Shown piece after piece: positions 29,540 to 52,747 of a DNA stretch of 64,000 nt (position 1 is the first letter of the stretch; each line of letters opens with the position of its first letter). The stretch covers positions 1-64,000 of the IMG/VR virus record IMGVR_UViG_3300033182_000674. One strand, written 5' to 3'. The notes below the pieces were generated by a model. The model was not told the DNA's origin. It ran no database searches and saw only the letters and a program-made list of their open reading frames with translations. The translations under genes and the position numbers were made by a program.

Positions 29540-29986
29540 TCATGCTTTTTGAACTACCATAAAAGATTTAAACATCCATCTTAATTTTCTATGATAGTCA
29601 AGTCTTTCTTCCAGAAAGTTCACTAGTCCAAATTGTTGTGCTTCATCAGCCATATTGCGTGTTTCCAAGATTAAAGCTAATAGCTTATCATTATCTTGAT
29701 TAATACGATCAATCATAACTCTTGAAGCTGGAATAGTTGTTTCATCTTCAATGATGCTTAGTTCACTAAATCTACCAAGTGAACCAGGCGCAAATGAATC
29801 TAATGCACGAATTTGTTCTGCATACTTATCTACAGAATTCCAAACGTCTTCATAAATATCACCAAAGAAATCGTGGAATTCATAAAAATCTGAACCTACA
29901 ACATTCCAATGGTAATAGTGCGTTTTTAGATAGAATGCAAAGGTTGTAGCCAATGATTCTTTCATTTTATCAAGTAACTCTTCCAT
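29540..29986 (-). CDS. dps: Dps/ferritin-like DNA-protection protein
   Basis: HYYHWNVVGSDFYEFHDFF..IYE...D.YAEQIRAL; late promoter at 30018-30025. Confidence 0.92.
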   Translation of the reverse strand: MEELLDKMKESLATTFAFYLKTHYYHWNVVGSDFYEFHDFFGDIYEDVWNSVDKYAEQIRALDSFAPGSLGRFSELSIIEDETTIPASRVMIDRINQDNDKLLALILETRNMADEAQQFGLVNFLEERLDYHRKLRWMFKSFMVVQKA

Positions 29987-33381: not shown

Positions 33382-33386
33382 TTATT

Positions 33387-35219: not shown

Positions 35220-35228
35220 TTCAAAACC

Positions 35229-35924
35229 TCATTCGGTCGTGGTCGATTTTAATTTTTGTGTATCAGTGTAATATGTTTTAGTTACACCTAATTCACCTGG
35301 CATTAATTGTTTACACATTATAGCATCATTAGGCCATAACCCAAATTGATTAACCAACTCTATTAGATGCTTAGCTGCACTAGGTTTAATTATATATGCA
35401 GAGTTTCCAGCCAAACCTTGTGGTACGTTATCAGAATCTATTGATGGTACTGGTTGAAAATCATTATCTTTACTTTGAATTTTACTATCAAACAAATGAG
35501 CTTTACGAGTATTACCAATAGGATTGTTGATACCTATTATACCATATTTTGTATCAGTCGTGTTAAAATTTATTTTCTTTTTAAAAATTGCATCATGTTC
35601 TAATATAAGAATTGGCTCATCATCTTCAACACATTTCTTCCATAGATTATAATGACTCATAGCACAAGCAATTCTACTATCTGGATTCTTTGTAGGATAT
35701 GCTTTCTTTAGTAAGCCAGAAGCCATATCAAGCCCACCACCAGTCCAAGGATAATTCCATTTAACACCATTAATGGCCATATCTTTATTTACATTAATAG
35801 GTGTGATTGCATCAAATCTTTCAATTTGAAAATCATTACTAACTTTTTCAGAGCTTTCTACTAATTTAGAATAAGCAGACTCAGATAATTCGTTATCTTT
35901 TATTACTATACAATATGCTTTCAT
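35229..35924 (-). CDS. Glycosyltransferase family 25
   Basis: RFDAITP, IACAMSHYNLWKK, ILILEHDA, GNSAYIIKP.AAK.L, PND. Confidence 0.88.
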   Translation of the reverse strand: MKAYCIVIKDNELSESAYSKLVESSEKVSNDFQIERFDAITPINVNKDMAINGVKWNYPWTGGGLDMASGLLKKAYPTKNPDSRIACAMSHYNLWKKCVEDDEPILILEHDAIFKKKINFNTTDTKYGIIGINNPIGNTRKAHLFDSKIQSKDNDFQPVPSIDSDNVPQGLAGNSAYIIKPSAAKHLIELVNQFGLWPNDAIMCKQLMPGELGVTKTYYTDTQKLKSTTTE

Positions 35925-36598
35925 ATTTTCTTAGATGAAGAATTTAATTCTTTTTCCTTTATATATTTTACTGGAGATGGATGAATATAATACAAAGAGA
36001 ATAATTCATCGTCAAACAATAAATCGTTTTGTGTCCAGCCGTTTGTTTTACACCAATCAACAATAATTTTACACGCTTCTGGTGTTAGAATATACCCAGT
36101 ACCGCCTGCAAAATATTTTTTACCGTGAGGATGTACATAAAACACTTTATGTAATCCATCACCATTTATATTTAATTGTGTTGTATTCTTTAAATTATTA
36201 TAATGCTTTAAGGCAATAAGCATACTATCAGTTGTTAATTGTATACCTAATGGAGTATTCATATTAAAATTATTTGGAATATTTAAATCACCACAACAAA
36301 CTGTATCATGTTCAACAATAGCAATAGGTTCATTTAATTCTATACATTTTACCCATAATTCATAATGTGAATAGAAACAAGCTTTCTTTGTTAATGCTAA
36401 TTTTTGATTACTATATTTTTTAGTTAATTCACCAGTCTTAATATTATACTTTTTATCGTAATCATTTAATATTGAAGGATAACATCCATCATGTAATTGT
36501 GGTTCCCATCCTTTATATTTTAAAAAGGTATCATAAGATTCTTTGGCAATCTTTTCAGATTGATCATATATTGAATTATATACTATAAATGTTTTCAT
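35921..36598 (-). CDS. Glycosyltransferase family 25
   Basis: ACFYSHYELW.KC...IAIVEHD, GTGYILTPEAC..I. Confidence 0.82.
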   Translation of the reverse strand: MKTFIVYNSIYDQSEKIAKESYDTFLKYKGWEPQLHDGCYPSILNDYDKKYNIKTGELTKKYSNQKLALTKKACFYSHYELWVKCIELNEPIAIVEHDTVCCGDLNIPNNFNMNTPLGIQLTTDSMLIALKHYNNLKNTTQLNINGDGLHKVFYVHPHGKKYFAGGTGYILTPEACKIIVDWCKTNGWTQNDLLFDDELFSLYYIHPSPVKYIKEKELNSSSKKI

Positions 36599-36600
36599 AA

Positions 36601-37263
36601 TTAAAAATCGTAATTAAATGCTTCAATATCTCTTTTATACAAATTAGCAATTAAATCTTTACTCTCGGTTGAAAATAATTCTTTATAAGCTTTATTATTA
36701 TTTTTAGACGGATTAGTCCTTTTGTCAAAAGACTTGTCTTTAAAAAATGGTATTTGTTGCATATCATCTTTTAAATTTTCAATTTTACAAATTTTGTCGA
36801 ATATTGATACATCTTTTATCCATGTCATTTGATCATGTGCTAAGCTAAACCAAGTATTATTCCAAGGGAGGTTAACATTAATGTGTAACCATTCATTAAA
36901 ATCTTTTTCCATTAAATTAAGTTCATTTAATAAAATAGTATCTGGTACTCTTTTAAACTTTCTAATTCGACTAGTTGTTTTTTTATATAATGAATTTGCT
37001 AATATTTCTTTTCTAAAAAAATACCAACTGCATACTCTATCCCAAGGATTTCTAACAACAGTAAACTTATAATATGAATTAAAATCAGGAATTTGTTTTT
37101 GACACATATCAATTGTAGAATGATAATTACCATCTGTTGTTTTATTATTAGTTACTTCATAGATATCTTTATTAATTCTGCCCATTGCAACTCTAACTGA
37201 TTTACCAGCAGTTTTAGGAATATGAACAAAGAGTAATTTTTCTTTTGGTGAATATACACTCAT
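36601..37263 (-). CDS. Sulfotransferase family 2
   Basis: FVHIPKTAGKS (5'-PAPS loop), FTVVRNPWDRVCSWY, YKRDIEAFNYDF. Confidence 0.9.
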   Translation of the reverse strand: MSVYSPKEKLLFVHIPKTAGKSVRVAMGRINKDIYEVTNNKTTDGNYHSTIDMCQKQIPDFNSYYKFTVVRNPWDRVCSWYFFRKEILANSLYKKTTSRIRKFKRVPDTILLNELNLMEKDFNEWLHINVNLPWNNTWFSLAHDQMTWIKDVSIFDKICKIENLKDDMQQIPFFKDKSFDKRTNPSKNNNKAYKELFSTESKDLIANLYKRDIEAFNYDF

Positions 37264-37904
37264 TAAGTAATATCCTTAGTAAAAATAATATTATATTGAT
37301 TAGTATATTCTTCATCTCTAAAAGATGAAGTAAAACCTTGAGAATGTAAAAAGTCTATAATCTTATTATCTATAACCTGATCTTTCCAGAATTGTTTGCT
37401 TTCTACTTCTATCTTTATCAAAGATGTTTTTTCTAAAATTGATTTAGCACCAACTAATACTTCGTAGCCAACACCTTCAACGTCTATCCACATTGCAATA
37501 TTATTATATTCATTAGAAAACATATGATCGATTTTATCTACAGAAACTGTAACATGTTCATAATGAACATTACTTTCTGTTCTTTCAAGTATAGAATTAT
37601 TCTTTTTGGTTTTAGGCATGATTCTGCCATTATTAGTCAATTGAACATAAAATGTAGTTTTACCAACATAATCTGATATTGCTAAATTATTAAATTCAAT
37701 ATTAGAAGGAAGTGTATCTTTAAACATATCATAATTATAAGGATTAGCTTCGTATGCAATTACTCTACATTCAGGAACTAATTTTTTTACTTTACAACTT
37801 GTTTGTGCATTAAATGAACCAATTTCTAAAAATAAGTCAGGTTTAGTATCAGAAATTAAAGAATAAAATTTCTGATCTAACTCATTTACATCTAATGTTT
37901 TCAT
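37263..37904 (-). CDS. FkbM-family methyltransferase
   Basis: FLEIGSFNA, IAYEANP, NLAISD, MWIDVEG.GYEVL.GA. Confidence 0.88.
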   Translation of the reverse strand: MKTLDVNELDQKFYSLISDTKPDLFLEIGSFNAQTSCKVKKLVPECRVIAYEANPYNYDMFKDTLPSNIEFNNLAISDYVGKTTFYVQLTNNGRIMPKTKKNNSILERTESNVHYEHVTVSVDKIDHMFSNEYNNIAMWIDVEGVGYEVLVGAKSILEKTSLIKIEVESKQFWKDQVIDNKIIDFLHSQGFTSSFRDEEYTNQYNIIFTKDIT

Positions 37905-38686
37905 AATATAACCTTTTTTAATTGTTCTATGTTATTACCACGATCTAGTAGTTTATCTCTTAAGAAGAAATGAACAAAGTATGCTTCCTTAATCTTATCA
38001 TCAATAACACCTTTATACAAAGCATTCCATTTCCAATCCATGTTTTTTACTTTCATCTTTTCTCTCTTAACCCATGTATTTAAAAGAGTCTGATCTGTAG
38101 ACCATTTCCACGCACCGATGCCATCAACAAAATCTTTAAATTCTGGACGGCGAATAAATTGTTCTGGCGTATCACCTCTTAGGTAAGTATCTATACTTTT
38201 ATTAAAGACCATTAATCCCATATTAAAGAATTCAGCACCAAGACTATTCCACTTCCAATCAACATCTTTTAATGAATCATATTGCATTCTAGAATAATTA
38301 ATAATCTTTCTTTTATAGTCTTCAGTTAATGGCATTTCACGTTCTACAACTCCGCCAAAATCGTAACTCGAATCCAAATCATCAAAAATATTAGGTGCTG
38401 TATCACGTATATAGATGTCAGCGTCCACAATAGAAATTTGATCGTATTGCCCCAAATAACCAAAAGCATTTTCTTTTTCATAGATTGGCAAAAAGCCTCC
38501 ATGTTTTTCATAAGACTCTTTACTACGATTAGTAGCAAATACATCAGGCTTAATTGCAAGAATAGGATGTCGTTGTACAATATGATCTATATCGTATTTC
38601 TTACAATACGCTGCAACTGATTCTACACAAAAATCATATAGTTTATTTCGTTGGCCAACATAGACCTGATAGATTAATCGTTTCAC
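37901..38686 (-). CDS. GT-A glycosyltransferase (GT8-like)
   Basis: IVDADIYI (DxD), FFNMGLMV, TDQTLLN, KWNAL, FVHFF. Confidence 0.8.
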   Translation of the reverse strand: MKRLIYQVYVGQRNKLYDFCVESVAAYCKKYDIDHIVQRHPILAIKPDVFATNRSKESYEKHGGFLPIYEKENAFGYLGQYDQISIVDADIYIRDTAPNIFDDLDSSYDFGGVVEREMPLTEDYKRKIINYSRMQYDSLKDVDWKWNSLGAEFFNMGLMVFNKSIDTYLRGDTPEQFIRRPEFKDFVDGIGAWKWSTDQTLLNTWVKREKMKVKNMDWKWNALYKGVIDDKIKEAYFVHFFLRDKLLDRGNNIEQLKKVIL

Positions 38687-39522
38687 TTCAATACCTCTGG
38701 ATAAAATGCTTCATAGAACCATTTATTACTATTAATAATATGATTATGAAATCCATCACTTAATTTTCTATTTGGTTCTTTCCACGGTAATAATTGTGGT
38801 TTAGTTACATGTTCTGTTTTTTCTGCGAAGTAAGCATTATCATGTTCAAACATTTCTGATTGAGTAATATTATTTAGATCATGTTTATATGGTTTAAGCT
38901 CTAAGAATTCATATACCTTTTCTATGATATATATTGGATCTTTAAGGAAGTCTTCGTAACGAAGAAACTGAATTCTTTCTGGTTGTTCATTCCACAGGTA
39001 CATAAGCTTTCTAACTTCTTTATTTAAGCCTTCATGTAAACTTGTTTCTTTAAAATCTAAATAATAAGATAGCTTTTCATTTTCTGTCATAGAATTATAA
39101 GGCGTATCATTTTGACCAAGAGTATCATATGCAGCAAAAGAAGAATTTAATTTATCAAAGCTTTCTATTACATCTCGTAGATCACGAATAGTAACAAGTA
39201 TCTTTGACTTTGGAAAGAGGTGATGTAAATCACTCCAGTTTCTGGCTTTTGATATAACACTTGGTTTATTAGTTAAACCTGAATACCAGCCTTGAGCACC
39301 ATAAGTAATTAATCCATGATAAGCCGCATCAGCTTGTCTAACAGACATTGCTTGGACTTGTTCATTATAGCGTGAACGAGTTAATATCTTCTTATGAAGA
39401 ATAAAAGGAAGCGGATCAGTTGTAGTGGTAAATACTTCTGGATTCTGTTGAAGTATATTCATCAATACTGTAGATCCAGAACGTGGTAAACCACTACATA
39501 AATGTAAATTTTTCATATTCAT
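38683..39522 (-). CDS. Sulfotransferase (P-loop type)
   Basis: SGLPRSGSTVL..IL.QNP, KILVTIRDLRDVIES, LRYEDFL.DP. Confidence 0.9.
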   Translation of the reverse strand: MNMKNLHLCSGLPRSGSTVLMNILQQNPEVFTTTTDPLPFILHKKILTRSRYNEQVQAMSVRQADAAYHGLITYGAQGWYSGLTNKPSVISKARNWSDLHHLFPKSKILVTIRDLRDVIESFDKLNSSFAAYDTLGQNDTPYNSMTENEKLSYYLDFKETSLHEGLNKEVRKLMYLWNEQPERIQFLRYEDFLKDPIYIIEKVYEFLELKPYKHDLNNITQSEMFEHDNAYFAEKTEHVTKPQLLPWKEPNRKLSDGFHNHIINSNKWFYEAFYPEVLK

Positions 39523-39565: not shown

Positions 39566-40984
39566 TTAGTATTGTTGTCCTGCTGACCTATATCTACCAG
39601 AGGTTATATCACCTACATCTGTTGCATTAGCATCTGATGCGAATGGGAACTTATCTATAACATTAACATAGCCATCAGTTGCATTAAAGCCACCAGATGA
39701 ATAACCATCTGATGTAGATGATTGACCTGTTACACCCCATCTAGAATGAGTCAGATCACCAACATCGGTTGCATTGCCATCGGTTGCAAATGAAAACTTG
39801 TCGATGATCGTCTGAACCGAACCGGCGTCGCCACCAGAAGTATAACCATGCTCAGAAGAAGATTGACCTGCTGCACCATATCTAGTAACGGTTATATCAC
39901 CGACATCTGTTGCATTAGCATCAGTTGCGAATGGGAATTTGTCTATAACATTGCCACCATAATTTAGTCCACCTGAAGTATAACCATGCTCAGAAGAAGA
40001 TTGTCCTGCTGAATAACCTCTAGCAATGGTTAGATCGCCGACATCAGTCGCATTTCCATTTGTTGCAAACGGGAATTTGTCAATTACATTTATATTATAA
40101 GCACCAGAATTGTATCCATACTCAGTTGATGATTGGCCTGATAAATAATATCTACCAACGGTTAGATTACCGACATCTGTTGCATTAGCATCAACTGCGA
40201 ATGGGAATTTGTCTATAACATTTCCAACTGCTGGTACGGGTGAACCACCAGAAGTATATCCATTTTCTGCAGAAGATTGACCTGCTGGATAACTTCGGTT
40301 TGTAGTACTTAAATTAGCAACAAATATTGAGTTCGCATCAGATGCAAATGGGAACTTTTCAATGAGAGTTTCACCACCGGCACCACCACTATTGTATCCA
40401 TAATTAGAACCTTGAGCTTGAGTGCCACCTGCAGCAAATGATATAGTAAATTCAGACAACGCAGTAGCAAGGTTATTACCATCAGATGCTCTGAAAGTAA
40501 CATCAAAAGTACCGCCTTCTGAATCATAACCAGCACTTAATATATCTGCAAGGGACTTAGCAGTAATCGTAAACGTACCATTAGAATCGTTCGTAATAGT
40601 CGCAAGATCATTACCCGAATCTGTTACTAAGTAAGACCATTGAATTGGAAATCCATCTGGATCTGTCGCGGCCAATGTAATAGTAGTTGCAATTCCACCA
40701 ATAGAGTCTAGATCATAAGCAGCTTCTGGTAAACCACCAGAATCCCAAGTAGGAGTAGCATTAATTAAAGCAATACTATACCAACCAGATCCATTCCAGA
40801 TGTATAGTTTATTATTTGATGCTACAAATGCTTGATCACCAATTTGATTGCCGGTTGCTGGTAAATTATCAATAGTAGCATAATCTTCAGTGCCTAAAGG
40901 AACATCTGCTGAAATAGCAGTTTCACCAATTTTACCATCTTGGCCGATGATTTTTGTTAGATAAAAAGATTTAGTAATTGCCAT
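39566..40984 (-). CDS. Array B paralog 4: N-module plus six-repeat propeller
   Basis: Same N-module and IDKFPFA.DANATDVGD repeats as 12529-13965; ends GQQY. Confidence 0.88.
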   Translation of the reverse strand: MAITKSFYLTKIIGQDGKIGETAISADVPLGTEDYATIDNLPATGNQIGDQAFVASNNKLYIWNGSGWYSIALINATPTWDSGGLPEAAYDLDSIGGIATTITLAATDPDGFPIQWSYLVTDSGNDLATITNDSNGTFTITAKSLADILSAGYDSEGGTFDVTFRASDGNNLATALSEFTISFAAGGTQAQGSNYGYNSGGAGGETLIEKFPFASDANSIFVANLSTTNRSYPAGQSSAENGYTSGGSPVPAVGNVIDKFPFAVDANATDVGNLTVGRYYLSGQSSTEYGYNSGAYNINVIDKFPFATNGNATDVGDLTIARGYSAGQSSSEHGYTSGGLNYGGNVIDKFPFATDANATDVGDITVTRYGAAGQSSSEHGYTSGGDAGSVQTIIDKFSFATDGNATDVGDLTHSRWGVTGQSSTSDGYSSGGFNATDGYVNVIDKFPFASDANATDVGDITSGRYRSAGQQY

Positions 40985-40996
40985 TTCTTTTATTCC

Positions 40997-42451
40997 TTAA
41001 ATTTGATAACCACCGGTATGTTCTGGTCCGCCAGTCATTGATAAAACTGATTGTGAAGTAATTTCATTTGCATAAGCAAATTTTATTTTCTGACTGCTGC
41101 TGCCGGTGCTTACATATGCACTTGTTAATTCACATGAAGAAGCGCCATATTGATTACTTTGTGATAAATCTCCAACATTTGAAGTATTCCCTTCATTGGC
41201 AAATGGCATTTTTCTTAATGTTGCGTAGTAAGTACCAAATATTAAATCTCGGCCGCCATATGCATAACCATCAGTTGCACTAGCAGCACCCACAGGACCA
41301 TTACGAGCTCCATCTATGTTACCTATATTACCTAAAGAACCATTACTTGCAAAACTATATTTTTGTATATTACTCAATGCCGCTTGAGATGGGGGAAAAT
41401 ACTGGCCGCCAGCAACATAACCATTCTCTACACCGTTCATTGGTGCTTGATCTACTGATTTTTGTGTTAAACTACCACTGTTTATTGGTGTTTCGGATGC
41501 AAAAGGATATCGTTTAACTGCAGCTTGAACTGGTGGATTCCATGAATATGGGTTATAACCGCCCATTCTATAACCATCTGTTTCGGAAGACATTCCAGCT
41601 CCACCATATAGATTGTAAGCAAAACTACTTTCTATTGAGGTTGTTGGAAAAGTAACAGTTGAGCCACCTGCTGCAAATGGAAATTTTGCAACGTTATTAT
41701 TATTTCCATTTGGTACTCCTGGATAAGTATAACCACTAAATACATATCCAGCTTCTTTTGATGACATACCTACATGATAGCCTCGTACACTTGGCGCTCC
41801 ATTAATTGGGTGATATGCTTCAGTTGTAATAGTTTCAGAAGCATATGGAAATCTTAGTATTTGATTAGCAGTTGTATAATAACCAGTAGTTGATCCTTGA
41901 AATACATATGGAATATATAAACTAATTGTAAATTCAGACAAAGCTGAGGCAATATTAATTCCATCTGTTGCTCTAAAAGTAACATTAAACGTTCCACCTG
42001 TTGAATCATATGATTCAATTTGAGATGTTGGTAATGCTGTAATAGTAAATACACTTGAATCTTGTTGAATAGTTGCCAAATATTGAGCAGAATCAGATGC
42101 TGAATAATCCCACGTAATAGGTAATCCTTCAGGATCAGATGCTGATAATTGTATAATAGTTGAACCAACATTATACGAATCTAATTCGTATTCTGCTGCA
42201 GGTTGACCACCAGAATCCCATGTGGGACTCTGATTGATTAAAGCGATATTATACCAACCGGCTCCAGTCCAAATGTATAAACGATTTGTCGCTTGTACAA
42301 ATGCTTGATCACCTACTTGATTACCAGTTGCAGGTAAGTCATTTGCTGTAGTATAATCTTCAGTACCTAATGGAACATCGGCACTCAACTTTTCAGTATT
42401 AATTGTAGTTGAGGTATTTAATAGTTTTGATAAATTAACTGAATTAGACAT
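40997..42451 (-). CDS. Array B paralog 3: N-module plus divergent propeller
   Basis: N-module intact; repeats diverged (RFPYASE, KFPFAAG, RYPFASE, KYSFASN, KMPFANE). Confidence 0.8.
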   Translation of the reverse strand: MSNSVNLSKLLNTSTTINTEKLSADVPLGTEDYTTANDLPATGNQVGDQAFVQATNRLYIWTGAGWYNIALINQSPTWDSGGQPAAEYELDSYNVGSTIIQLSASDPEGLPITWDYSASDSAQYLATIQQDSSVFTITALPTSQIESYDSTGGTFNVTFRATDGINIASALSEFTISLYIPYVFQGSTTGYYTTANQILRFPYASETITTEAYHPINGAPSVRGYHVGMSSKEAGYVFSGYTYPGVPNGNNNNVAKFPFAAGGSTVTFPTTSIESSFAYNLYGGAGMSSETDGYRMGGYNPYSWNPPVQAAVKRYPFASETPINSGSLTQKSVDQAPMNGVENGYVAGGQYFPPSQAALSNIQKYSFASNGSLGNIGNIDGARNGPVGAASATDGYAYGGRDLIFGTYYATLRKMPFANEGNTSNVGDLSQSNQYGASSCELTSAYVSTGSSSQKIKFAYANEITSQSVLSMTGGPEHTGGYQI

Positions 42452-42461
42452 TTTTTATTTC

Positions 42462-43556
42462 CTATACCGTTATGATACTGCCTTCTGTTATGTTTGACCA
42501 TGTAGGATTACCATTTGTTTGATTTGATCTCAATGTCGCAAAGGTTACCCAATTTGCTGCATCATAAGTACCGTTTAAATTTCCAGTGTAATATTGTAAT
42601 AATGTTTCTTGTGGGCATCTATTAGGTCGTGCACCAATAAATGTTCTCAAATTTAATGAACCACCTTCCATTGCAGTGTATTCAATTGGATCATGTAAAT
42701 ACCATGCGATCCAATGTCCTGTTCCAGATGACCAAGATGTTCTTGCACCATTAAACATATTACCAGGACCAGCATCCCAACCACCATTATACGTTGTTTG
42801 TGTAAATGGATCACTGGCGTTTGAAGTATATATGCCATATTTTCCAGGAACTGGTATTTGCCCATATGTTGCGGACATAGCAGTTCCAGATGTTCCTGAC
42901 GTTGATAATCTAGTACCATCGCCTAAATAAATTCCTCCAGCATTATCAATATCCCAGAGATAATAACTTGGACCAACACTAGCATATAATCTCCACAATT
43001 GGAAAGTATTTGGCGCCCAACCTAATGTAAAGTTTGAACTTGCTGTTGCTGTATTTACTCCATCAGATGCTTTAAATGTAATATCAAATGAACCACCACT
43101 TGAATCATATCCAGCATCTAAAATATTTTGTAATGACTTTGGTGCAATTATAAACGTTCCATTTGAATCATTTGTAACTGTAACAAAATCATCACCTGAA
43201 TCCATTTCGTAAGTCCAATTTAAGACTTGCTCTTCTGGATCAGTTGCGATCAAATTAATTGTTGTTGAAGCAACAGAATCTAATACATACGCTGCTTCAG
43301 GTAATCCTGCAGAATCCCATATTGGAGATTCATTTACTAATGATATATTGTACCAACCTTGTCCATTCCAAAGATATAATCTATTTGTAGAAGCAACATA
43401 GGCTGTATCACCAGTATCATTACCACTTAATGGTAAATCATTTGGCGTTGCATAATCTTCAGTACCTAATGGTACTTCATCGGAAATAGCAGTTTGAACA
43501 ATCTTACCATTATCTCCAATTATTAAACCAAGATTAAAAGACTTTGAAACGGCCAT
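42462..43556 (-). CDS. Array B paralog 2: N-module plus unrelated C-terminal domain (possibly discoidin-like)
   Basis: N-module, then NMFNG..SW..WIAWY..PNRCP..LQY..NWV pattern. Confidence 0.72.
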   Translation of the reverse strand: MAVSKSFNLGLIIGDNGKIVQTAISDEVPLGTEDYATPNDLPLSGNDTGDTAYVASTNRLYLWNGQGWYNISLVNESPIWDSAGLPEAAYVLDSVASTTINLIATDPEEQVLNWTYEMDSGDDFVTVTNDSNGTFIIAPKSLQNILDAGYDSSGGSFDITFKASDGVNTATASSNFTLGWAPNTFQLWRLYASVGPSYYLWDIDNAGGIYLGDGTRLSTSGTSGTAMSATYGQIPVPGKYGIYTSNASDPFTQTTYNGGWDAGPGNMFNGARTSWSSGTGHWIAWYLHDPIEYTAMEGGSLNLRTFIGARPNRCPQETLLQYYTGNLNGTYDAANWVTFATLRSNQTNGNPTWSNITEGSIITV

Positions 43557-43559
43557 ATA

Positions 43560-44714
43560 TTAATCCATTGTTAATGTATCAATATAATCATTAGCATCCA
43601 TCATACGAACAGATGGTGTAGTGCCAGATCTTCTATTACAGCTAGCACCAATGTATGTTACACCACTAACTGTACCATCACCAATTTTAACCCAGTTATT
43701 ACTAGTATGACTAGATTGTCTATACCACCAACGTGATACGCCATTTGCAACTCTTACAGCAAACCACCAATCAGTACAAGTAGAACCTTGATATGCATTA
43801 TATGTAGTGTCAATACCAGTAAAACCAAAGCCATTCGAATCAGTATCATTACTTAATCGACTAACACCTTCAACAACTTGATTACTTGCGTTGTATAAGT
43901 ACATACCACCACCACCTCTATTACTGAAGCTGGTCGCATAACCAGAGAAATAATATACTGCTAAGTATTCATCACCTAATTCCATTGTCCTTGGTTGAAC
44001 ATGCATACCATCAAACATTTTGGTTGTACTTGTAAGAGTCCATGTCCCAGTGTTAGCATCGTATGAATCAGTCCATGTACCACCATCACTATACGCATCT
44101 AATAAAACACGAGTTGAATTAGCCCAAGCATCTCCTTGAGTATCTAAGTTAACTGCAACACCATTGGAAAAGGTAATTGTAAATTCTGATACAGCACCAA
44201 TGATATTAATACCATCAGTCGCTCTAAATGTTACAGCAGCAGTACCACCTGCAGAATCATATCCAGCTGCTAGAATATCTTCAAGTGTTTTCGCAGTAAT
44301 TGTAAACTCATCATTGTTTTGAGAAATTGTAAATAGATCTGCAGCAGAATCAGCTGCTTCATATGTCCATTGTATAGGTAAACCTTCTGGATCAGATGCA
44401 GCCAATTGAATTACAATAGGTGTTCCACTATTTGAATCCAGTTCATATGCAGCTTGAGGTTGGCCATTGGAGTCCCATATTGGACTTTCATTAATTAAAG
44501 CAATATTATACCAGCCAGCTCCAGTCCAGACATAAAGACGATTTGTTTCAGCGACATAAGCTTGATCACCAACTTGATTACCAGTAGATGGTAATTGCGT
44601 GGCTGTACTATAGTCTTCGGTTCCTAGTGGAATATCTTCAGACAAAGCTTGTGTTGATATCTTGTTATCTTGTCCAAGAATTAAGCCTAAATTAAAAGAC
44701 TTAGATACAGCCAT
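43560..44714 (-). CDS. Array B paralog 1: N-module plus unrelated beta-sandwich-like C-terminus
   Basis: N-module, then Trp/Tyr-rich strands (WWFAVRV..VSRWWYR..WVKIG). Confidence 0.72.
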   Translation of the reverse strand: MAVSKSFNLGLILGQDNKISTQALSEDIPLGTEDYSTATQLPSTGNQVGDQAYVAETNRLYVWTGAGWYNIALINESPIWDSNGQPQAAYELDSNSGTPIVIQLAASDPEGLPIQWTYEAADSAADLFTISQNNDEFTITAKTLEDILAAGYDSAGGTAAVTFRATDGINIIGAVSEFTITFSNGVAVNLDTQGDAWANSTRVLLDAYSDGGTWTDSYDANTGTWTLTSTTKMFDGMHVQPRTMELGDEYLAVYYFSGYATSFSNRGGGGMYLYNASNQVVEGVSRLSNDTDSNGFGFTGIDTTYNAYQGSTCTDWWFAVRVANGVSRWWYRQSSHTSNNWVKIGDGTVSGVTYIGASCNRRSGTTPSVRMMDANDYIDTLTMD

Positions 44715-44726
44715 GATTGTTTCCTA

Positions 44727-45668
44727 TTAGTTATCAGTTGTTTCTTCGGTTGGTTCTTTATAACCAATCATCTTATCATAACTAATACCTTCTGTGATAC
44801 CATTCTTGAATCCCATCGTATTCATACGAATTTCATCAACTTTCACCACATCAATCAATTCATTGACTACTGTATCTACGAATTCATGTAGACCACTAGT
44901 GTCCCAGCTACCAGTAGATAACTCTTGCTGAATATAAGCTTTAATTGTTACCAACATTTTAGTTGGATTAACGCCTATTTGCTCAAGGTATTCCTGTTCG
45001 CCTTTGGTAATAGAACCATATTGTCTTACGTCACGAATACATTGAACAACACTTCTTTTCAGATGAGCTTTTGACTCTTGTTTCTCAATGTCTTCTTCAT
45101 TAAATTCGCCCATATTTTCTTGTAATTGTTCATACAAGTCAGTAAGAGCTAGAATGTCTTTCATAGCACCTTCAATATATGTTGTGCCACTTGCCATTCC
45201 TTCTTTTAATTCGAGAAGTTTTACTTTAAGATCAACTTCTCTCCAGTATTCGATTTCAGGATTAGAAAGTTCTTCTTCTATCTTTTTAATCTTAACTTCG
45301 TTTTTAACTTGTCGCCACTTAGCTTCATTCAAAGCTGATTTCTTACTAGAAATCTCAGCAGCAATTTGTCTCATATTCTTTTCAGGACTATGGTAAGATA
45401 AATTAATATGTTTCCACATCCATTGTGTATGGCTTCTATTCCAAATGTTTTGAAGATCTTGAGTCTTCGCTAACGCTTGGTCAACCATAACACTATTCTC
45501 TACAAGACTTCTACCACCAAATGATTCAGTCTTTGCGAGTGTACCATGTCCAAATACTTTTGATACAGGTACATTATATTCAGATCCGTCGGTTACAATT
45601 AAATCTTGTCTAATCTCTTCAAATAGAGTTAATTCAGTATTTAATTCTTTAGTGTCTGTTTCAGCCAT
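44727..45668 (-). CDS. Coiled-coil-rich protein heading array B (313 aa)
   Basis: WNRSHTQWMWK..NMRQIAAEI..KK.AL.E motif; co-transcribed with the array. Confidence 0.65.
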   Translation of the reverse strand: MAETDTKELNTELTLFEEIRQDLIVTDGSEYNVPVSKVFGHGTLAKTESFGGRSLVENSVMVDQALAKTQDLQNIWNRSHTQWMWKHINLSYHSPEKNMRQIAAEISSKKSALNEAKWRQVKNEVKIKKIEEELSNPEIEYWREVDLKVKLLELKEGMASGTTYIEGAMKDILALTDLYEQLQENMGEFNEEDIEKQESKAHLKRSVVQCIRDVRQYGSITKGEQEYLEQIGVNPTKMLVTIKAYIQQELSTGSWDTSGLHEFVDTVVNELIDVVKVDEIRMNTMGFKNGITEGISYDKMIGYKEPTEETTDN

Positions 45669-45819: not shown

Positions 45820-47151
45820 TCATTTAAACCTATCAGGCCCATGAATCCATATAACAAGTGTCCATCTTTCACCTTTTGTTACAGGATGTACTTTGTGTAA
45901 ACAGAATGATGGGAAGGTTGTAATTGCACCACGTTCCATAATTGCATCAACAAGATTACCATTATTATTCACTTCAAGTTTACCACCTTCATATGATGAA
46001 GGATCTGATAATTGAATAACAACAGATAATTTACGAGTAGCAGATTGACCAGCTCCAGCATCAATATGCCAGTCATAATGACCACCTTCTTTATAATGTA
46101 ATAGCTGAAGACTATGAGTAATACCTAATAGATCAAACTTATAAAGCTCTTTATTTAGATGCTCTGCCGCAGCAGCAATCTTAGTATAAATCCATTTATA
46201 TTTCTCTTCTAAAGGAATATTATAAACATCTACTGTTCTTGTTTCAGCAGCATATGTACCTTCGTAATCACCAGCTCCAACAGTACCTTTGACTTCATAA
46301 AGATCATCTTTAGATTCAATAATCGATTGGCATTCTTCTGGTGTTAACATTGCTGATGGCATATTATGAGAACCTAGAGTGGCAATTCCTGGGAAAGTAT
46401 CATCACATCGGCGTATCATAATACCGTCTTCAATAATATTTTTATTCATACCAAAATCAAATGGTTCACGTTCTTGCTCTTCAGGTTGAGGTGCACGCTC
46501 TGGAAAATCTTCCATTTGTGGTATTTCACGCGGTGGAATAACAAATGTTGGTCGTTTAATTTCTTGTACATTAGGAGTAGTTTCTCCTTTAATACGAACT
46601 AAATCACCAGCATGACCAGCATTCTGACCTTCTGCATCTACAAAATGAAAGAATACTTGTGTTTGCCATTTTCCTTTATATGTTGTACGCCAATGTGGTA
46701 ATTCTTCACCACGATACATAACCATATCACCAACATCAATTTGAACTTGTTCACCAATTCTATCATCCATATCTTTACCAAAATAAATTGGCCAAATACG
46801 AGATTCTTCTGCGTGTCCAAGAGTTAATGTACCAGAAATTTCGCATGCTGGTCGATCAGTATGCCATTCTAATGTTTCACCTGGTTTATAAATTCTAGAG
46901 TAACAATAAGCAGGCAAAAGCTTTATACCCAATTGATCGGATAATGGTTCTGCAAGATTGTTTAGAATTTGTTTTAAATAGACATCATTATAAATGCTTT
47001 CAGATAAAGGACACTGATCGTCTTGTTCAAGTTTACCTTCTTTAGAAAGTTCAAATAAATGGTTGGTCAAATCAGAACATGCTTGTTTATCAAGAACACC
47101 ACTAAGATATACCCAACCTTTATCTTTAAAGGCATCTGCCACTGGATTCAT
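45820..47151 (-). CDS. Tandem two-domain 2OG-Fe(II) oxygenase
   Basis: Domain 1 WHTDRPACEISGTL..HWR..VFFHF; domain 2 YDWHID..RKLSVVIQLSDP..GGKL..HKV.PVTKGER.TLV.W. Confidence 0.88.
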   Translation of the reverse strand: MNPVADAFKDKGWVYLSGVLDKQACSDLTNHLFELSKEGKLEQDDQCPLSESIYNDVYLKQILNNLAEPLSDQLGIKLLPAYCYSRIYKPGETLEWHTDRPACEISGTLTLGHAEESRIWPIYFGKDMDDRIGEQVQIDVGDMVMYRGEELPHWRTTYKGKWQTQVFFHFVDAEGQNAGHAGDLVRIKGETTPNVQEIKRPTFVIPPREIPQMEDFPERAPQPEEQEREPFDFGMNKNIIEDGIMIRRCDDTFPGIATLGSHNMPSAMLTPEECQSIIESKDDLYEVKGTVGAGDYEGTYAAETRTVDVYNIPLEEKYKWIYTKIAAAAEHLNKELYKFDLLGITHSLQLLHYKEGGHYDWHIDAGAGQSATRKLSVVIQLSDPSSYEGGKLEVNNNGNLVDAIMERGAITTFPSFCLHKVHPVTKGERWTLVIWIHGPDRFK

Positions 47152-47780: not shown

Positions 47781-47788
47781 TATAAATA
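47781..47788 (+). promoter_or_regulatory. Late promoter for the plus-strand envelope operon
   Basis: TATAAATA ~77 nt upstream of 47865. Confidence 0.65.
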
Positions 47789-47864
47789 GTATCATATACA
47801 TTGCTTACAAATATATGTATACTTGATTGATTTTTGACATAATCAATAATATGGAGAATAAAAG

Positions 47865-48461
47865 ATGTTTAGAAAATTAACTACTTTGCTGGTTTGCAGC
47901 ATTTTATCATTTTCTGTTATAGCAGAAGAAGCTGCAACTGATGCGCCAGTGTTGACCGGTGCAGGTACTTTAACAGATCCAATTACTACGCACTCAACTG
48001 GTAATAGCACTGTAACCACAAACGGAAGTATGACCACTAAAGTAGAGTCTCCTCCTCCTTCAGCTATTTCACCGCAATTTAGTGCAGGTAGTAATAGTGA
48101 TTTATGTACAGTTGGAGTTGCTGGTGCAGTACAAACACAAATTTTAGGTATCTCAGCTGGTACAACTTTCACTGAAGATAACTGTATTAGATTAAAGAAT
48201 GCAAAAACATTATATGATATGGGCATGAAGGTTGCTGCAGTATCAGTAATGTGTGGTGACCCCAAAGTATTTGATGCTATGATGATGGCTGGTACGCCAT
48301 GCCCTTATGATGGTATGATTGGAGTTGAAGCTAAAACAGCTTGGGAGAATGATCCTGAGCGTGATCCACGTTTCTTAAAGGAGAAAGAGGATGATGATAT
48401 ACGTAAGACCTTTAGCGCTAGCAGCGTGCTCGGTGCTTTGGGCTGGTTACTCATATTCTGA
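47865..48461 (+). CDS. Secreted Cys-containing protein with C-terminal membrane anchor
   Basis: Signal peptide; PPPSAISP..DLC..DNCIRLK..MC..TPCP; hydrophobic C-terminus. Confidence 0.75.
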   Translation: MFRKLTTLLVCSILSFSVIAEEAATDAPVLTGAGTLTDPITTHSTGNSTVTTNGSMTTKVESPPPSAISPQFSAGSNSDLCTVGVAGAVQTQILGISAGTTFTEDNCIRLKNAKTLYDMGMKVAAVSVMCGDPKVFDAMMMAGTPCPYDGMIGVEAKTAWENDPERDPRFLKEKEDDDIRKTFSASSVLGALGWLLIF

Positions 48462-49281
48462 TCCAGGATATACGTATGGATATACCCCTAACGCTGTTAC
48501 CAACGGTTATAGTTGGTCTATGGATAATGTTTTACCTTCTGCTCCAGGGCTAGATATTAATGGTGTTATTTACAGATATAGAACAGTAAAAGATCCAGAT
48601 GATCCAATGAAAGTTCATGTGCAGAATGAAAATGCAAATGGAAATGGTTATATCTTTAGAGAAACAGATGATTGGTCGGGAGTTCCTGGCAATTCAATCA
48701 ACAAATTAGTTTCAATTGATAATATTCCCAGATCAAACTGGGGTGATGGATCAATTGAAATAGAAGGCATTGGTACTATTGAAGAACCAAGTGTGATTTA
48801 TACTTATAGAGTAGATCCATGTTTTAATCCTCAATTGGATCCAGCGTGTGAAGGCTATATTCCACCACCAGAACCAACTCAACTTACTGTTGATGTGAAT
48901 GATTTATATAATGCTTTAGATGATGATGCAGTAAAAAATGCAATGAAGGAATACGACGACGGTGAGATCTACGACGAAGAAGAAAAAGAAAACAATAAAG
49001 AAGATAATGAAAAAGAAAAAAGTAAAAATCGTTTAGAAAAAGCAATGTCGGCCGTTGATAATAATCAAATGATGGCAGATGCTTTTGCTCAAGCGCAAAT
49101 GTTACAAGCTATGAATAATGTCATACCAATGAACTCTTATTATGTTGGCACTATTGATGGCGGAACATATAGTGAGACTGTCACATTAGATGGCGGTCAA
49201 ATACAGGATAATCCTGCTGGACGTAGAAATAATATGGCTCAGCAGAAACTGCATAAAGATATGGTTGATATGCAATACTAA
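48391..49281 (+). CDS. Secreted protein with beta-rich N-domain, Cys pair and acidic linker
   Basis: Signal peptide ending YSYS-DP; DPCFNPQLDPACEGY; QQKLHKDMVDMQY end. Confidence 0.72.
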   Translation: MMIYVRPLALAACSVLWAGYSYSDPGYTYGYTPNAVTNGYSWSMDNVLPSAPGLDINGVIYRYRTVKDPDDPMKVHVQNENANGNGYIFRETDDWSGVPGNSINKLVSIDNIPRSNWGDGSIEIEGIGTIEEPSVIYTYRVDPCFNPQLDPACEGYIPPPEPTQLTVDVNDLYNALDDDAVKNAMKEYDDGEIYDEEEKENNKEDNEKEKSKNRLEKAMSAVDNNQMMADAFAQAQMLQAMNNVIPMNSYYVGTIDGGTYSETVTLDGGQIQDNPAGRRNNMAQQKLHKDMVDMQY

Positions 49282-49334
49282 TTATTATGTTGTTATTATG
49301 GTAAAAACTAAAACACAACTAGGAGAAATTACAA

Positions 49335-49835
49335 ATGTTTAAGAAAACATTGTTAATCGCTGCTTTAAGTTTTTGTACTGGTTCGGCTTTAGCTGAAGAA
49401 GTACCTATTATTGGAAATGTACAATCTAAGTGTGTCATTAATATTGATACAATTGGTGTATATGGAAACCCTACTGCAGATAAACTAAGTACAACAAGAG
49501 CCGATGGCGGTATTGAACCAATCATTCGTTATGACGTATCTCTTGCTGATGCTTATAAAGCTAAAGTTACACATCCAAATAGCTTTTCAACTTCACCATC
49601 ATTAGATGATAATGTTACATGGGCTGGATCTACTTCTGTTGCTGATACTTCAGATGCAGGAATGTCTGGTTATGATGCAGCAAAAGTAGAATATGATAAT
49701 GTAACTGAATTTGATTTAACTGTTGCTGGATCTACTTGGTTTAAAGTATCATCTACTGCTACATATGGTTATGGTAAAGCATTACCAAGCGGTGAGTATC
49801 GTTCAATTGTACAAGCGGAGTGTATTGCAAAATAA
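49335..49835 (+). CDS. Secreted pilin-like (Csu/SCPU-like) protein
   Basis: Signal ALA-EEVP; GNVQSKCVI start strand and LPSGEYRSIVQAEC end strand recall chaperone-usher pilins; AGGAG RBS. Confidence 0.5.
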   Translation: MFKKTLLIAALSFCTGSALAEEVPIIGNVQSKCVINIDTIGVYGNPTADKLSTTRADGGIEPIIRYDVSLADAYKAKVTHPNSFSTSPSLDDNVTWAGSTSVADTSDAGMSGYDAAKVEYDNVTEFDLTVAGSTWFKVSSTATYGYGKALPSGEYRSIVQAECIAK

Positions 49836-49845
49836 GGTATAAATT

Positions 49846-50220
49846 ATGCGCTATATGATGTTAGCTTTGATGTTGGTTGTCAGTAGTTCTTATGCACATG
49901 AGATGACGCCAACATACCCTAAATTAACACCATCACACGTTGACGGAGTATCTGTAACTACAATGCAGATGTTCAATAAACGAAAAGATGTTGAATATTA
50001 TGAAATTGCTGTATTTGATTCAGAATGGAATCCTATTCCATTTGTTACATCATATAATGTAATTAAGATTAATTATCTCGGTCATGTTACGTTTGATATT
50101 TACATTCGTAATAAAGACCGAGATAAAGCAACATATATTTGTTCTAGATCTAAATTAAAGAGCGATGATTCTGCAGCAACATTAGTATCATCTAAAATAT
50201 GTTCTAAATTGAAGAAATGA
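49846..50220 (+). CDS. Secreted Ig-like protein, possible PapD-like chaperone domain
   Basis: Signal SYA-HEMTP; MFNKR..YYEI.VFD.EW.PIPF; ICSRSK...ICSK Cys pair. Confidence 0.45.
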   Translation: MRYMMLALMLVVSSSYAHEMTPTYPKLTPSHVDGVSVTTMQMFNKRKDVEYYEIAVFDSEWNPIPFVTSYNVIKINYLGHVTFDIYIRNKDRDKATYICSRSKLKSDDSAATLVSSKICSKLKK

Positions 50221-50222
50221 AT

Positions 50223-50627
50223 ATGAAAAAAATTGTTATTATATTATCGTTGCTTAGTGCAACTGCGATGGCTGAGACCAGTTCGTTAAATTTGGCATTA
50301 CCAAATATGGGTTCAACCTATGGATCTGATTCTATCAGAGCAGGCGATTTAGATTGTAAAAACTCTATCGGTGGCGCAACTAATTTAGAGTTTGGTGTAA
50401 CTGGTATTATTGATAATGCTGTAGGTCCTTTTGATAATGAGGATCCATTGAATCCACAATCTAAGGATATAGGCCTCTATGCAAGGATTACAATCCCTCT
50501 GGATGCGCCTAAGGAAAGAATTAACTGCAATACATTATATCAATTAGAACTACAAAAGAAAAGACTAGAAGTAATGAAACTTCAACAAGAATTAAGAAGA
50601 TTGCGTCAAATGCAATTTGAGAACTAA
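50223..50627 (+). CDS. Secreted protein with Cys pair and C-terminal coiled coil
   Basis: Signal AMA-ETSS; LDCKNSIGG..LEFG..GLYARITIPL..RINC..LELQKK. Confidence 0.7.
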   Translation: MKKIVIILSLLSATAMAETSSLNLALPNMGSTYGSDSIRAGDLDCKNSIGGATNLEFGVTGIIDNAVGPFDNEDPLNPQSKDIGLYARITIPLDAPKERINCNTLYQLELQKKRLEVMKLQQELRRLRQMQFEN

Positions 50628-50641
50628 ACCTGGAGCGATAT

Positions 50642-51091
50642 ATGGCAAAGGATCTCGGCGACGAATTAGAAAACATCGAAGAAGGTGTTGAAAATTTAAA
50701 GAACAAAGAATTCGAACTATTTGGTATTAAAATGACACCTATGACGATTGGTGCTGCTTTTGCTGCGCTATCAACAGTTGTTGGTGCATTATATGGTGGA
50801 TTTGTTATGTACCAAAAAGTTGAAGAGATTGCTAGCTTAGATCTAGGTTCATATGAACAACAAATGGTTGAAACCAGCAACCAAATAGAAATTCAAGGTA
50901 AATTGTTAGAATCTATTGAACAGAATCTACGTGATACTAAACAATTAACTTATGATATTGAAAAACGTGTCAACGACAAAGTCGTATATTTTGAAAATAA
51001 AATGGATAAATTTGAAAATAAAGTGGAAAACACGAAAACAGAATTAGAAGAAAAACTTCAAAAAGCTTTAGATAATCCATTGGCTAATTAA
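50642..51091 (+). CDS. Single-pass membrane protein with long coiled coil
   Basis: TM IGAAFAALSTVVGALYGGFVMY; heptad region; ends ALDNPLAN. Confidence 0.7.
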   Translation: MAKDLGDELENIEEGVENLKNKEFELFGIKMTPMTIGAAFAALSTVVGALYGGFVMYQKVEEIASLDLGSYEQQMVETSNQIEIQGKLLESIEQNLRDTKQLTYDIEKRVNDKVVYFENKMDKFENKVENTKTELEEKLQKALDNPLAN

Positions 51092-51104
51092 GGAGACACA
51101 ACTG

Positions 51105-51461
51105 ATGGTAGCAAAAGATGTATTAGATGAAATTGATATCGATGGTGATGGTTCAATTTCAGAACAAGAGATGCAAATCTATCTTGAAGCAAAACGCAGG
51201 GAGATGGAAGATGAAGATGCTAAAAGAGATCAACAACGTAAAATGGTTTGGTTCGCTCTTTTTGGTATGTTGCTTTATCCTTTGTTTGTATTTGGAACTG
51301 AAGCTTTGGGCTTCACTAATGCTTCTGGAGTAATTGGTGATATGGCACCAACTTATTTCATGTCTGTATCATTAGTAGTTGGCGCATTCTTTGGTGCTGA
51401 TGCTTATGTAAAAGGCAAAGACAAAAAAGGTGATAAGAATGATAAAAAAGATAAGAAATAA
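51105..51461 (+). CDS. Two-TM holin-like protein with an EF-hand-like loop
   Basis: DIDGDGSISEQE loop; two TM segments; basic C-terminal tail. Confidence 0.6.
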   Translation: MVAKDVLDEIDIDGDGSISEQEMQIYLEAKRREMEDEDAKRDQQRKMVWFALFGMLLYPLFVFGTEALGFTNASGVIGDMAPTYFMSVSLVVGAFFGADAYVKGKDKKGDKNDKKDKK

Positions 51462-51465
51462 AATT

Positions 51466-51837
51466 ATGTTGGTTGCATTAATCGCTAGTGCTTCTATAGC
51501 ACTAGCACAACCAGACATTCCTGAAATTCCACAGCCACAGCCTGAAAATCATAAGGGTATGGCATTGCCAATGATCCTTAGATGTTTTGATTATCCAGCT
51601 GATGAAGGCTTAAAGAATAGTTTTGGTGAGCTACCATTTGTTGAAGGCAATGGTGATATTGAGTTTACTAATTCTAAAGGATCTGTTCCTATTAAGATGA
51701 AGTTGTATGTTAATCCAGATACTCGCTCATGGACAACTGTATTCATCTTAAGTCCTACACTTAATTGTGTTGCTAGTGGTGGTGGTGCTGATTCATTTGG
51801 GCCAGCGAATGTAGCTGAAGAAGGAATCAGAATGTGA
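51466..51837 (+). CDS. Secreted hypothetical protein
   Basis: Signal MLVALIASASIALA-QPD; LYVNPDTRSWT...C motif. Confidence 0.6.
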   Translation: MLVALIASASIALAQPDIPEIPQPQPENHKGMALPMILRCFDYPADEGLKNSFGELPFVEGNGDIEFTNSKGSVPIKMKLYVNPDTRSWTTVFILSPTLNCVASGGGADSFGPANVAEEGIRM

Positions 51838-52747
51838 AATGGGTATTAATCTATATTACGCTACAAGGTGACTTTGGTAAAATGGCATCTTACGGTGAAT
51901 ATGATACAATGGACGGGTGCTTCGATGCTCGTGATAAATTAATCGAAGTGGTGGGTCGACCGATAGTAAACTATCAAGCTATTTGTGTAATAAAAGATGA
52001 GGAGCACTTTTAATGAGTGCAACAGAATTCGAAACTTTATCTCCTGAATTAAAAAAATTACAGTTAGATATGTTAGAAGGACATTGGTGCATCATAGCAT
52101 ATAATCCGTGGTATATTACATTGCGCAATCATACCACTGGTGAATTAAAGCAAGAAAGATATAGAGATTAACACCAACAACTATTTGGTTTACAGTCTTC
52201 TATTTTCTTTTTTCCAACACACATGTTATATACTGTTATTTTTAGATTTTGAGCATCAGTGGCAAAATCAACGCCACCACATTTAATATAGAGATTAATA
52301 CACTCTTTAAAACCTTTCATTGTTTCAAATTGTATAACCATTATAGATTATGCTCTTGAACAATTTCTCTAAGTTGACGTGCTATTTTATTATATTTGTA
52401 TTCCCAATTTTGTGATACTGCTAATTGATTTTCATACAAAGCTTTATAATCTACTTTCTTTGGAAAGAACTTATTAAATAAATTTTTAAACCACTCAATC
52501 ATTTCCAGTCATCCTCTGATAATCTTTGCTTTAACATATAATTCTCAGCCTCAAGGTGTCTGATTCTATTCAATAATTTCTTAGGATCAAGATTTTCAGT
52601 AGAATCAGAACCTTTTTGGCGAGAAGTTTCTTTTATTGCTTCACAATATTTTAGCATGTCTTTCGACATTATTCAGATATCCATTGAATAATAATCGATG
52701 TCATAAGACCTATAACGAAGCCAATACCAATATTAACAATATCCATT

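Follow-up and report, generated by a model that had tools for sequence, protein, structure and literature searches.

Chaperone and subunit of the Pap, Fim and Caf pilus systems are joined by donor-strand complementation, in which the A1 and G1 strands of the chaperone are laid against the A and F strands of the subunit. A pair of genes recalling this partnership was found in a virus, as g3 and g4 of a ten-gene operon (g1 to g10; 47865-52171, + strand) of the IMG/VR record IMGVR_UViG_3300033182_000674. The stretch analysed here, hereafter the window, is the first 64 kb (positions 1 to 64,000) of this 219,676-bp viral contig (G+C 34%). The order of g1 to g7 is conserved among relatives, the block has moved between unrelated phage lineages, it is linked to lysis genes, and its genome has no usher. 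We tentatively read it, at somewhat below an even chance, as a late, mobile and lysis-associated envelope module, built on a chaperone-subunit-like g4:g3 pair together with g5 and tied via g6 and g7 to the inner-membrane lysis machinery.

Among the described systems, the archaic (sigma, Csu-type) and alternate (CS1/CFA-I) chaperone-usher pili are the first to be compared. As in these pili, the gene for an apparently exported and disulfide-bonded immunoglobulin (Ig)-like subunit is followed by that for a PapD-N-like Ig protein, and the predicted contact is made via the first and last strands of both partners. The C-terminus of g3 is conserved (ECIA), as are basic residues of g4 at or near the predicted interface. 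Unlike those pili, however, the module has no usher, its putative chaperone has one domain, and neither partner has sequence family membership. Further, g3 has no evident long N-terminal donor strand, and its predicted disulfide joins the terminal strands. The module is also carried by lytic phages, behind a late promoter and beside lysis genes. The missing usher and the one-domain chaperone thus argue that this is not a classical pilus system.

Phage lysis cassettes are another kind of relative. Late expression, adjacency to holin and endolysin genes, the i-spanin topology of g6, and the holin-like size, hydrophobicity and charged tail of g7 are all shared with them. Nevertheless, no known lysis cassette contains Ig-like chaperone-subunit pairs, and g6 has no partner lipoprotein gene. 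Similarly, the WxL operons of Gram-positive bacteria recall the module as a usher-free sandwich protein with a PapD-like partner, since WxL is among the fold matches of g3 and WxLIP/DUF916 among those of g4; the cell envelope is a different one, and the likeness is drawn from the fold lists alone.

The chaperone-like fold of g4 (49846-50220, + strand; 124 amino acids, aa) is well supported by modelling. It is predicted to be an exported, single-domain PapD-N/MSP-like Ig protein with two invariant Cys, Cys99 and Cys119. When its AlphaFold2 model (predicted local distance difference test, pLDDT, 80) was compared with the PDB by Foldseek, the top matches were almost all chaperone-usher chaperones, namely PapD, FaeE, DraB, SafB, Caf1M, FimC and SfaE, with expect values (E) from 4e-4. 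The ESM Atlas model gave a template modelling (TM) score of 0.72-0.74 to PapD_N clusters, and a language-model search likewise landed on PapD_N; a BFVD fold search was uninformative. The mature part of about 107 residues makes up one domain, without the second, C-terminal PapD_C domain. So far as the models go, g4 thus has the exported, PapD-like N-terminal Ig domain of a chaperone-usher chaperone.

The pilin-like nature of its neighbour g3 (49335-49835, + strand; 166 aa) is a lead from modelling. The protein is predicted to be an exported Ig-like beta-sandwich in which a Cys33-Cys163 bond ties the first and last strands. Its model (pLDDT 85.6) found CfaB, the PapG pilin domain, FimG, AggA, CsuE, Caf1 and CsuA/B at the top of the Foldseek matches (E about 7e-3 to 4e-2, TM 0.35-0.5). 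Against the AlphaFold DB clusters it matched SCPU and DUF4402 proteins (E 1e-4 to 3e-4, TM 0.41-0.53), and SCPU, CS1 and DUF4402 were listed in ESM Atlas. The lead gains weight because g3 and g4 are adjacent and always co-inherited. The initial annotation, made from the sequence by a model, had called the 124-aa product Ig/chaperone-like and the 166-aa product pilin-like. The former fold is borne out by AlphaFold2/Foldseek and by ESM Atlas; of the latter, the beta-sandwich with pilins as its nearest folds stands, and the likeness itself is weak.

The two mature proteins are also predicted to bind each other, by way of their edge strands and in the manner of chaperone and subunit in chaperone-usher systems. 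Over three runs the complex prediction gave a median ipSAE of 0.70, whereas the best of 3 controls scored 0.00. The score mark used is reached by 58 of 80 solved complexes and by 2 of 110 mismatched pairs, counts that are only a rough guide with custom alignments; the rows of Vibrio phage Bennett were left out of the alignments used for structure prediction. On the g3 side, the predicted interface comprises residues 30-37, 40-43 and 156-166, that is, the first and last strands with Cys33 and Cys163. On the g4 side it comprises residues 18-24 (HExTPTY), 43-48 (with invariant Asn44 and Arg46 and nearly invariant Asp48) and the last strand, 111-121. As the interface is known as lists of residues, both groove-filling and sheet extension by a g4 strand are compatible with it.

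It is quite unlikely that these folds are a coincidence, with g3 and g4 being ordinary periplasmic Ig-like binders of carbohydrate, metal or peptidoglycan and the operon a piece of late cargo beside lysis genes. The lack of sequence homology to the chaperone-usher families would fit such a view, and so would the start of mature g4 (49897-49920, residues 18-25; HExTPTYP), where the His is invariant in 11 of 11 sequences of the T4-like group, as in the copper ‘histidine brace’ proteins. However, the homologue in the Vibrio phage lacks this His, and g4 was accordingly rejected as a histidine-brace protein. Coincidence is further opposed by the finding that, with two methods, the products of two adjacent, co-inherited genes match the two respective partners of a single two-component system, and by the predicted g3:g4 binding, for which the controls scored 0.00.

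Membership of the chaperone-usher families was searched for at the sequence level as well. The initial annotation had remarked that no usher is present, and the search with the usher family PF00577 agrees, as it gave no match at E <= 10 anywhere in the 219.7-kb genome; no product of the operon is longer than 296 aa. For PapD_N (PF00345), g4 has no Pfam match, and none was found in the genome at the same cut-off. The genome has likewise no SCPU (PF05229) or DUF4402 (PF14352) match at E <= 10, and g3 has no Pfam match. In the Pfam scan of the products g3 did not match PF04449 either, a family for which no separate genome-wide search was run. Profile searches of the PDB sequences with the alignments of g2, g3, g4 and g5 gave no match.

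These results bear on the proposal of a true phage fibre, which we consider unlikely. In such a case g3, once freed from g4, would polymerise by donor-strand exchange and exit via a g5 pore or a hijacked host usher, to serve in aggregation, exclusion or release. The subunit-like g3, the chaperone-like g4 and a predicted interface with chaperone-usher geometry would all suit it. The g5 gene, moreover, lies where an usher gene would lie and encodes two strongly amphipathic beta segments and an oligomerising helix, and the segment preceding the first strand of g3 is conserved, with Gly27 invariant. That segment, however, is only about 9-12 residues long and is partly occupied by the predicted g4 interface, while the Cys33-Cys163 bond between the first and last strands suggests a closed fold. 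The genome lacks an usher and g4 lacks the second domain found in chaperone-usher chaperones, and a fibre made late, on a cell near lysis, has no obvious use. As for the phage-built surface structure or pilus on the infected cell envisaged at the outset, no result shows a fibre or any structure of that kind.

Conservation of the gene order was observed in two sets of relatives. When IMG/VR was scanned with g3, 15 loci were obtained, and each of them keeps the g1-g2-g3-g4-g5-g6 order at 35-70% identity. A second scan, with g7, gave 131 relatives, of which 80 loci were kept and the operon and lysis proteins mapped onto them; the g1-g7 order is retained in dozens of these. The flanking genes vary from locus to locus and map to scattered sites in the genome of the window, which indicates that the block moves as a cassette.

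The cassette is found in phages of very different kinds. The major capsid protein of the window's contig is of the T4 type (Pfam Gp23, E 6e-151), and its nearest cultured relatives are those of Phage C48C1 (71% identity) and of the myophages Melnitz (Methylophilales) and HTVC008M (Pelagibacter), both 64%. A complete g1-g7 block is also present in a 62-kb contig, with g5 and g7 74% and 82% identical to those of the window; this contig is not T4-like, as it has a Terminase_6C and a Mu-gpT-like capsid gene. Furthermore, the T5-like Vibrio phage Bennett has counterparts of g3-g4-g5 in gp148-gp149-gp150. A weak match links g3 to phrog_25895, the family of gp148; the two proteins share 25-31% identity, and both Cys align. 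The product gp149 is a member of phrog_25455 and can be aligned with g4, again including both Cys. Given its presence in T4-like, T5-like and 62-kb phages, the g3-g4-g5 triad is the part common to three unrelated lineages. The annotated start of Bennett gp149 appears to be too late (L017, 4600-5067 region), as the frame extends upstream to MRSSVILLSLLISGWANA, a signal peptide; similarly, the annotated Leu start of gp150 probably lies inside a longer exported protein.

When bacterial genomes were scanned with the g3 alignment, only short contigs of metagenome-assembled genomes (MAGs) were obtained (L020-L028), from Rhodobacteraceae, ‘Melainabacteria’ and Pseudomonadales bins, one bin holding four different g4 copies. 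These look like mis-binned phage DNA and are no evidence of a host or of a bacterial operon. With the g4 profile, 301 genomes from the class to which one of these MAGs belongs yielded six weak matches, consistent with chance. In the literature that was searched, no description was found of phage-encoded SCPU/DUF4402-like or PapD-like proteins, of a phage chaperone-usher system or of this cassette.

Lysis genes are the recurrent neighbours of the cassette. In 28 loci, the gene after g7 encodes a homologue of a 152-aa membrane protein of the window (28733-29191), with an endolysin of the T4-lysozyme type coming next in six of them; in about 19 loci an endolysin follows g7. Locus L087 has a GTA_holin_3TM holin (E 4e-23) and a Peptidase_M15 endolysin (E 3e-18) directly 3' of g7. 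A homologue of the window’s own endolysin stands directly 5' of g1 in L040 and L041, in the former with a 64-aa two-span protein between. A GH19-like lysin abuts g1 in L012, a phage lysozyme lies 1.3 kb upstream in L015, and a Hydrolase_2 protein with a signal peptide comes after g7 in L009. Bennett encodes a small lipoprotein after its triad and then, 0.6 kb downstream of the triad, a T-holin (E 3e-49) and an endolysin. This repeated adjacency makes the cassette part of a lysis-gene block in at least three phage lineages.

The linkage holds even where the exported core is missing. Thirteen loci have g7 and an endolysin without g2-g5, and g1 also co-occurs with g7 and an endolysin in loci of this kind. 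In L110, the order is a small lipoprotein, a g1-like gene, a 280-aa exported protein, a g6-like gene, g7 and a GH108 endolysin. Thus, g1, g6 and g7 are the frame of the cassette and g2-g5 its replaceable exported core, while g7 is the head gene of holin-endolysin cassettes, including those of phages without g2-g5. Among other observations at these loci, endolysins bearing a lipoprotein or other signal adjoin the module in L037, L009 and L041. A 110-aa gene of the ‘cyanophage outer membrane protein-like beta-barrel’ family (Phage_OMP, E 1e-8; L009, 4273-4602) lies directly 5' of g1 and adds a further envelope-directed gene to this neighbourhood.

The operon consists of ten abutting or overlapping genes with spacings of -71 to +53 nt. 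Nearly all genes of the window are on the - strand, and 47865-52171 is its longest + strand block; the GC skew is positive only in 48-52 kb of the window. An exact copy of the T4-type late promoter motif TATAAATA lies in the intergenic sequence at 47781-47788 (+ strand), 77 nt 5' of the g1 ATG, which has a GGAG ribosome site. By number, the motif shows no excess over chance in the window (16 copies observed against 12.8 +/- 3.7 expected). Its positions tell more: although 91% of the window is coding, 11 of the 16 copies lie between genes; 14 are on the - strand, which is that of the majority of the genes, and most lie 28-77 nt 5' of a start codon on the same strand. The only two + strand copies (24781 and 47781) stand upstream of the endolysin gene (24824) and of the operon. 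In six of ten related loci, the motif is found 37-50 nt upstream of the g1 homologue. The promoter call is therefore made on position (intergenic, before a gene, kept in relatives) and not on the count.

Signal-peptide-like N-termini with AxA-type cleavage sites were recognised by inspection in g1, g2, g3, g4, g5 and g8. The mature parts of these six have 2 or 4 Cys each, invariant across the family alignments of g1-g5, whereas the membrane proteins g6 (one hydrophobic span) and g7 (hydrophobic segments) have none. From these features, Sec export and periplasmic disulfide formation are predicted for g1-g5 and g8. The initial annotation had described a late + strand operon of envelope-targeted proteins, running against the strand bias behind TATAAATA, with six signal-peptide products, most of them having paired Cys, and two membrane proteins. 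The layout and the product types hold, with the Cys even in number and conserved. The signal peptides, the Cys and the motif positions support the predicted envelope targeting and late expression. Its nine genes, eight and a small open reading frame, are all present, and a tenth, g10, was missed just beyond the end that it had set.

The late promoter also weighs on the possibility of superinfection exclusion or receptor masking, which is improbable as the role of the operon. Here, the exported proteins would keep a host surface receptor from being used or assembled, as when a chaperone-usher pilus of the host is capped, so that neither infected cells nor lysis debris would trap phages. Receptor masking by phages is known, as with Llp of T5. 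The products appear to be directed to the periplasm or the outer membrane, a subunit-like protein comes with its own chaperone, and FimI and PapH, which are chaperone-bound terminator or inhibitor subunits, are among the structural matches. Known exclusion genes, however, are mostly early, and the very different tails of the T4-like, T5-like and 62-kb phages argue against a single shared receptor.

The lysis-gene neighbourhood in many marine phages, which the initial annotation had missed, makes a role in lysis, or in the envelope at the time of release, likelier than a free-standing pilus, and on this the lysis-associated module is preferred. In the proposed mechanism, g4 would bind g3 in donor-strand-complementation geometry, its N-terminal segment and its last strand lying along the two terminal strands of g3. 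The beta hairpin and coiled coil of g5 would work with this pair, a partnership suggested by the retention of the triad in all three lineages. The link between the periplasmic proteins and the lysis machinery of the inner membrane would be made by g6, through its inner-membrane anchor and periplasmic coiled coil, and by g7, with its EF-hand and holin-like character. At about the moment of holin firing, the module might then act in the periplasm or on the outer membrane, either by destabilising or bridging the latter or by retaining or steering the exported endolysin.

Several points weigh against this reading. What the module does we infer throughout, and so it is with the function of each member. 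No sequence profile ties g3 or g4 to the chaperone-usher families, and the g3:g4 score may reflect the model’s memory of solved chaperone-subunit complexes. Adjacency to lysis genes also marks hot spots of late cargo, such as bor and stx in the lambdoid phages. Moreover, in the window’s own genome the module does not lie beside the lysis genes (endolysin at 24.8 kb, spanin candidate at 29.2 kb). As this lysis set seems complete without g1-g6, the module would be an accessory at most and not the spanin itself.

A bolder form of the lysis-associated reading, possible though on the unlikely side, is that a new, usher-free class of donor-strand machinery serves at least three lineages of abundant marine phages as a functional part of lysis. 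It could be an assembly of g3, g5 and g6, spanning the periplasm or breaching the outer membrane, that is freed from g4 at holin firing, or else a controller of exported endolysins. If true, it would be a lysis component without earlier description. How pelagic T4-like phages lyse their marine Gram-negative hosts is poorly understood, and recognisable holins or spanins are missing from many of these phages. A large, conserved and mobile exported family tied to holin-endolysin cassettes (thousands of clusters for g5, more than 1600 for g1) is, therefore, a candidate for a missing or additional lysis step. A chaperone-subunit-like pair without an usher, in a virus, also bears on the origin and range of donor-strand systems. 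The T5-like Vibrio phages that carry the triad can be cultured, and the question is thus within the reach of ordinary phage genetics.

When all ten products were compared with Pfam, PHROGs and NCBIfam, only function-less PHROGs, a sub-threshold EF-hand in g7 and noise were obtained. A Shiga-toxin-B match was discarded as part of that noise, as it covers a signal peptide alone (E 0.03). The first gene, g1 (47865-48461, + strand; 198 aa), encodes a signal peptide, a Thr/Ser-rich linker, SPPPSAISP, a helical-looking domain with four Cys (phrog_20531) and a C-terminal Gly-Gly/poly-Leu tail. Its family has 1641 clusters at 50% identity, with homologues in pelagiphages and roseophages. A Pfam search of 24 long relatives gave no partner domain, the matches being low-complexity or miscalled fusions. 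The tail, with Gly-Gly and poly-Leu in most homologues, looks like a sorting signal from which the usual basic end is missing. An 83-aa lipoprotein of L110 (3857-4108), encoded just 5' of the g1-like gene in a g1-X-g6-g7-endolysin cassette, is similar in its mature part to the latter half of the Cys domain of g1 (E 2e-5), and the domain thus appears to exist in an outer-membrane-anchored form too.

The next gene, g2 (48391-49281, + strand; 296 aa), overlaps g1 by 71 nt (48391-48461), where one frame encodes the C-terminal tail of g1 and the other the signal peptide of g2; the longest open reading frames of the two overlap in homologues as well. The protein is predicted to be exported and has a beta-rich N-terminal domain (invariant DDW, Cys144/Cys153), an acidic linker and a conserved C-terminal region, with no match in Pfam or among the PDB sequences. 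Downstream of g4 lies g5 (50217-50627, + strand; 136 aa), another putatively exported protein, with the amphipathic beta segments NLEFGVTG and DIGLYARITIPL, invariant Cys47 and Cys104 and a C-terminal heptad helix. Its family (phrog_37374) has 3867 clusters at 90% identity, and homologues occur in 174 records of T5-like Vibrio phages. A Pfam search of all members of the g5 alignment gave nothing consistent.

A type II inner-membrane protein is predicted for g6 (50642-51091, + strand; 149 aa), with about 32 acidic residues in the cytoplasm, a single membrane span and, in the periplasm, a coiled coil that ends with NPLAN. Its gene is always located between g5, or a substitute exported protein, and g7. 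The N-terminal span and periplasmic coiled coil give it an i-spanin-like topology; no open reading frame with a lipobox was found within or adjoining g6, as would be sought for a two-component spanin. A canonical spanin formed by g5 or g6 with a lipoprotein was ruled out, because the AxA signal of g5 is cleavable in all homologues and g6 has no lipoprotein partner.

The small membrane protein g7 (51105-51461, + strand; 118 aa) carries an EF-hand loop at its N-terminus and the invariant motif RDQQRKMVWF, together with hydrophobic segments and a tail rich in Lys. Its EF-hand matches (E about 8e-5) are below the Pfam cut-off, and no holin family was matched in Pfam, PHROGs or NCBIfam. By inspection it is nevertheless holin-like, being a small membrane protein with a charged C-terminus and having holin or endolysin neighbours in many loci. 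A calcium-sensing holin is one possibility for g7 and a regulator of holins another; where a recognised holin comes next, it may be a regulator instead of a holin.

The end of the operon is variable. The product of g8 (51430-51837, + strand; 135 aa, GTG start), predicted to be exported and with two Cys, has no family match in Pfam, PHROGs or NCBIfam, and its gene follows g7 in just 2 of 80 related loci. The small abutting reading frames g9 (51834-52013; 59 aa) and g10 (52013-52171; 52 aa), both on the + strand, are not conserved in related loci and have no Pfam or PHROGs match.

Elsewhere in the window, the endolysin gene (24824-25279, + strand; phrog_894, E 9e-28) has by eye an M15-like SxH...D pattern. 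Its lipobox signal MIKLISVGVLVFFIYGC (IYGC) suggests an exported, possibly lipid-anchored enzyme. It was found via PHROGs; the T-holin, T4-lysozyme, GH19 and Hydrolase_2 families are absent from the genome. A candidate unimolecular spanin (29188-29538, - strand; 116 aa) has an N-terminal lipobox and a C-terminal membrane span, and it is the only lipobox reading frame of spanin pattern in the genome; the module is, therefore, not simply a spanin. Its holin-like partner is the 152-aa membrane protein mentioned above (28733-29191, - strand), with a late promoter motif (29229) 38 nt upstream. Adjoining the spanin candidate on its other side is a gene that is Dps/ferritin-like by eye (29540-29986, - strand), with a late promoter motif at 30018.

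A search of a phage collection for near-identical DNA gave no match to the window, and such DNA is present in aquaculture, estuary, marine and seawater metagenomes. The - strand also carries three apparent runs of tandem paralogues, at 7158-13965 (five genes, about 360-490 aa), 32761-39522 (eleven, about 180-280 aa) and 39566-45668 (five, about 310-480 aa); the five genes of the last run have no Pfam match. Proteins with a 2OG-Fe(II) oxygenase domain are encoded on the - strand at 17817-18845, there together with DUF6817, and at 45820-47151, immediately upstream of the operon and on the strand opposite to it.

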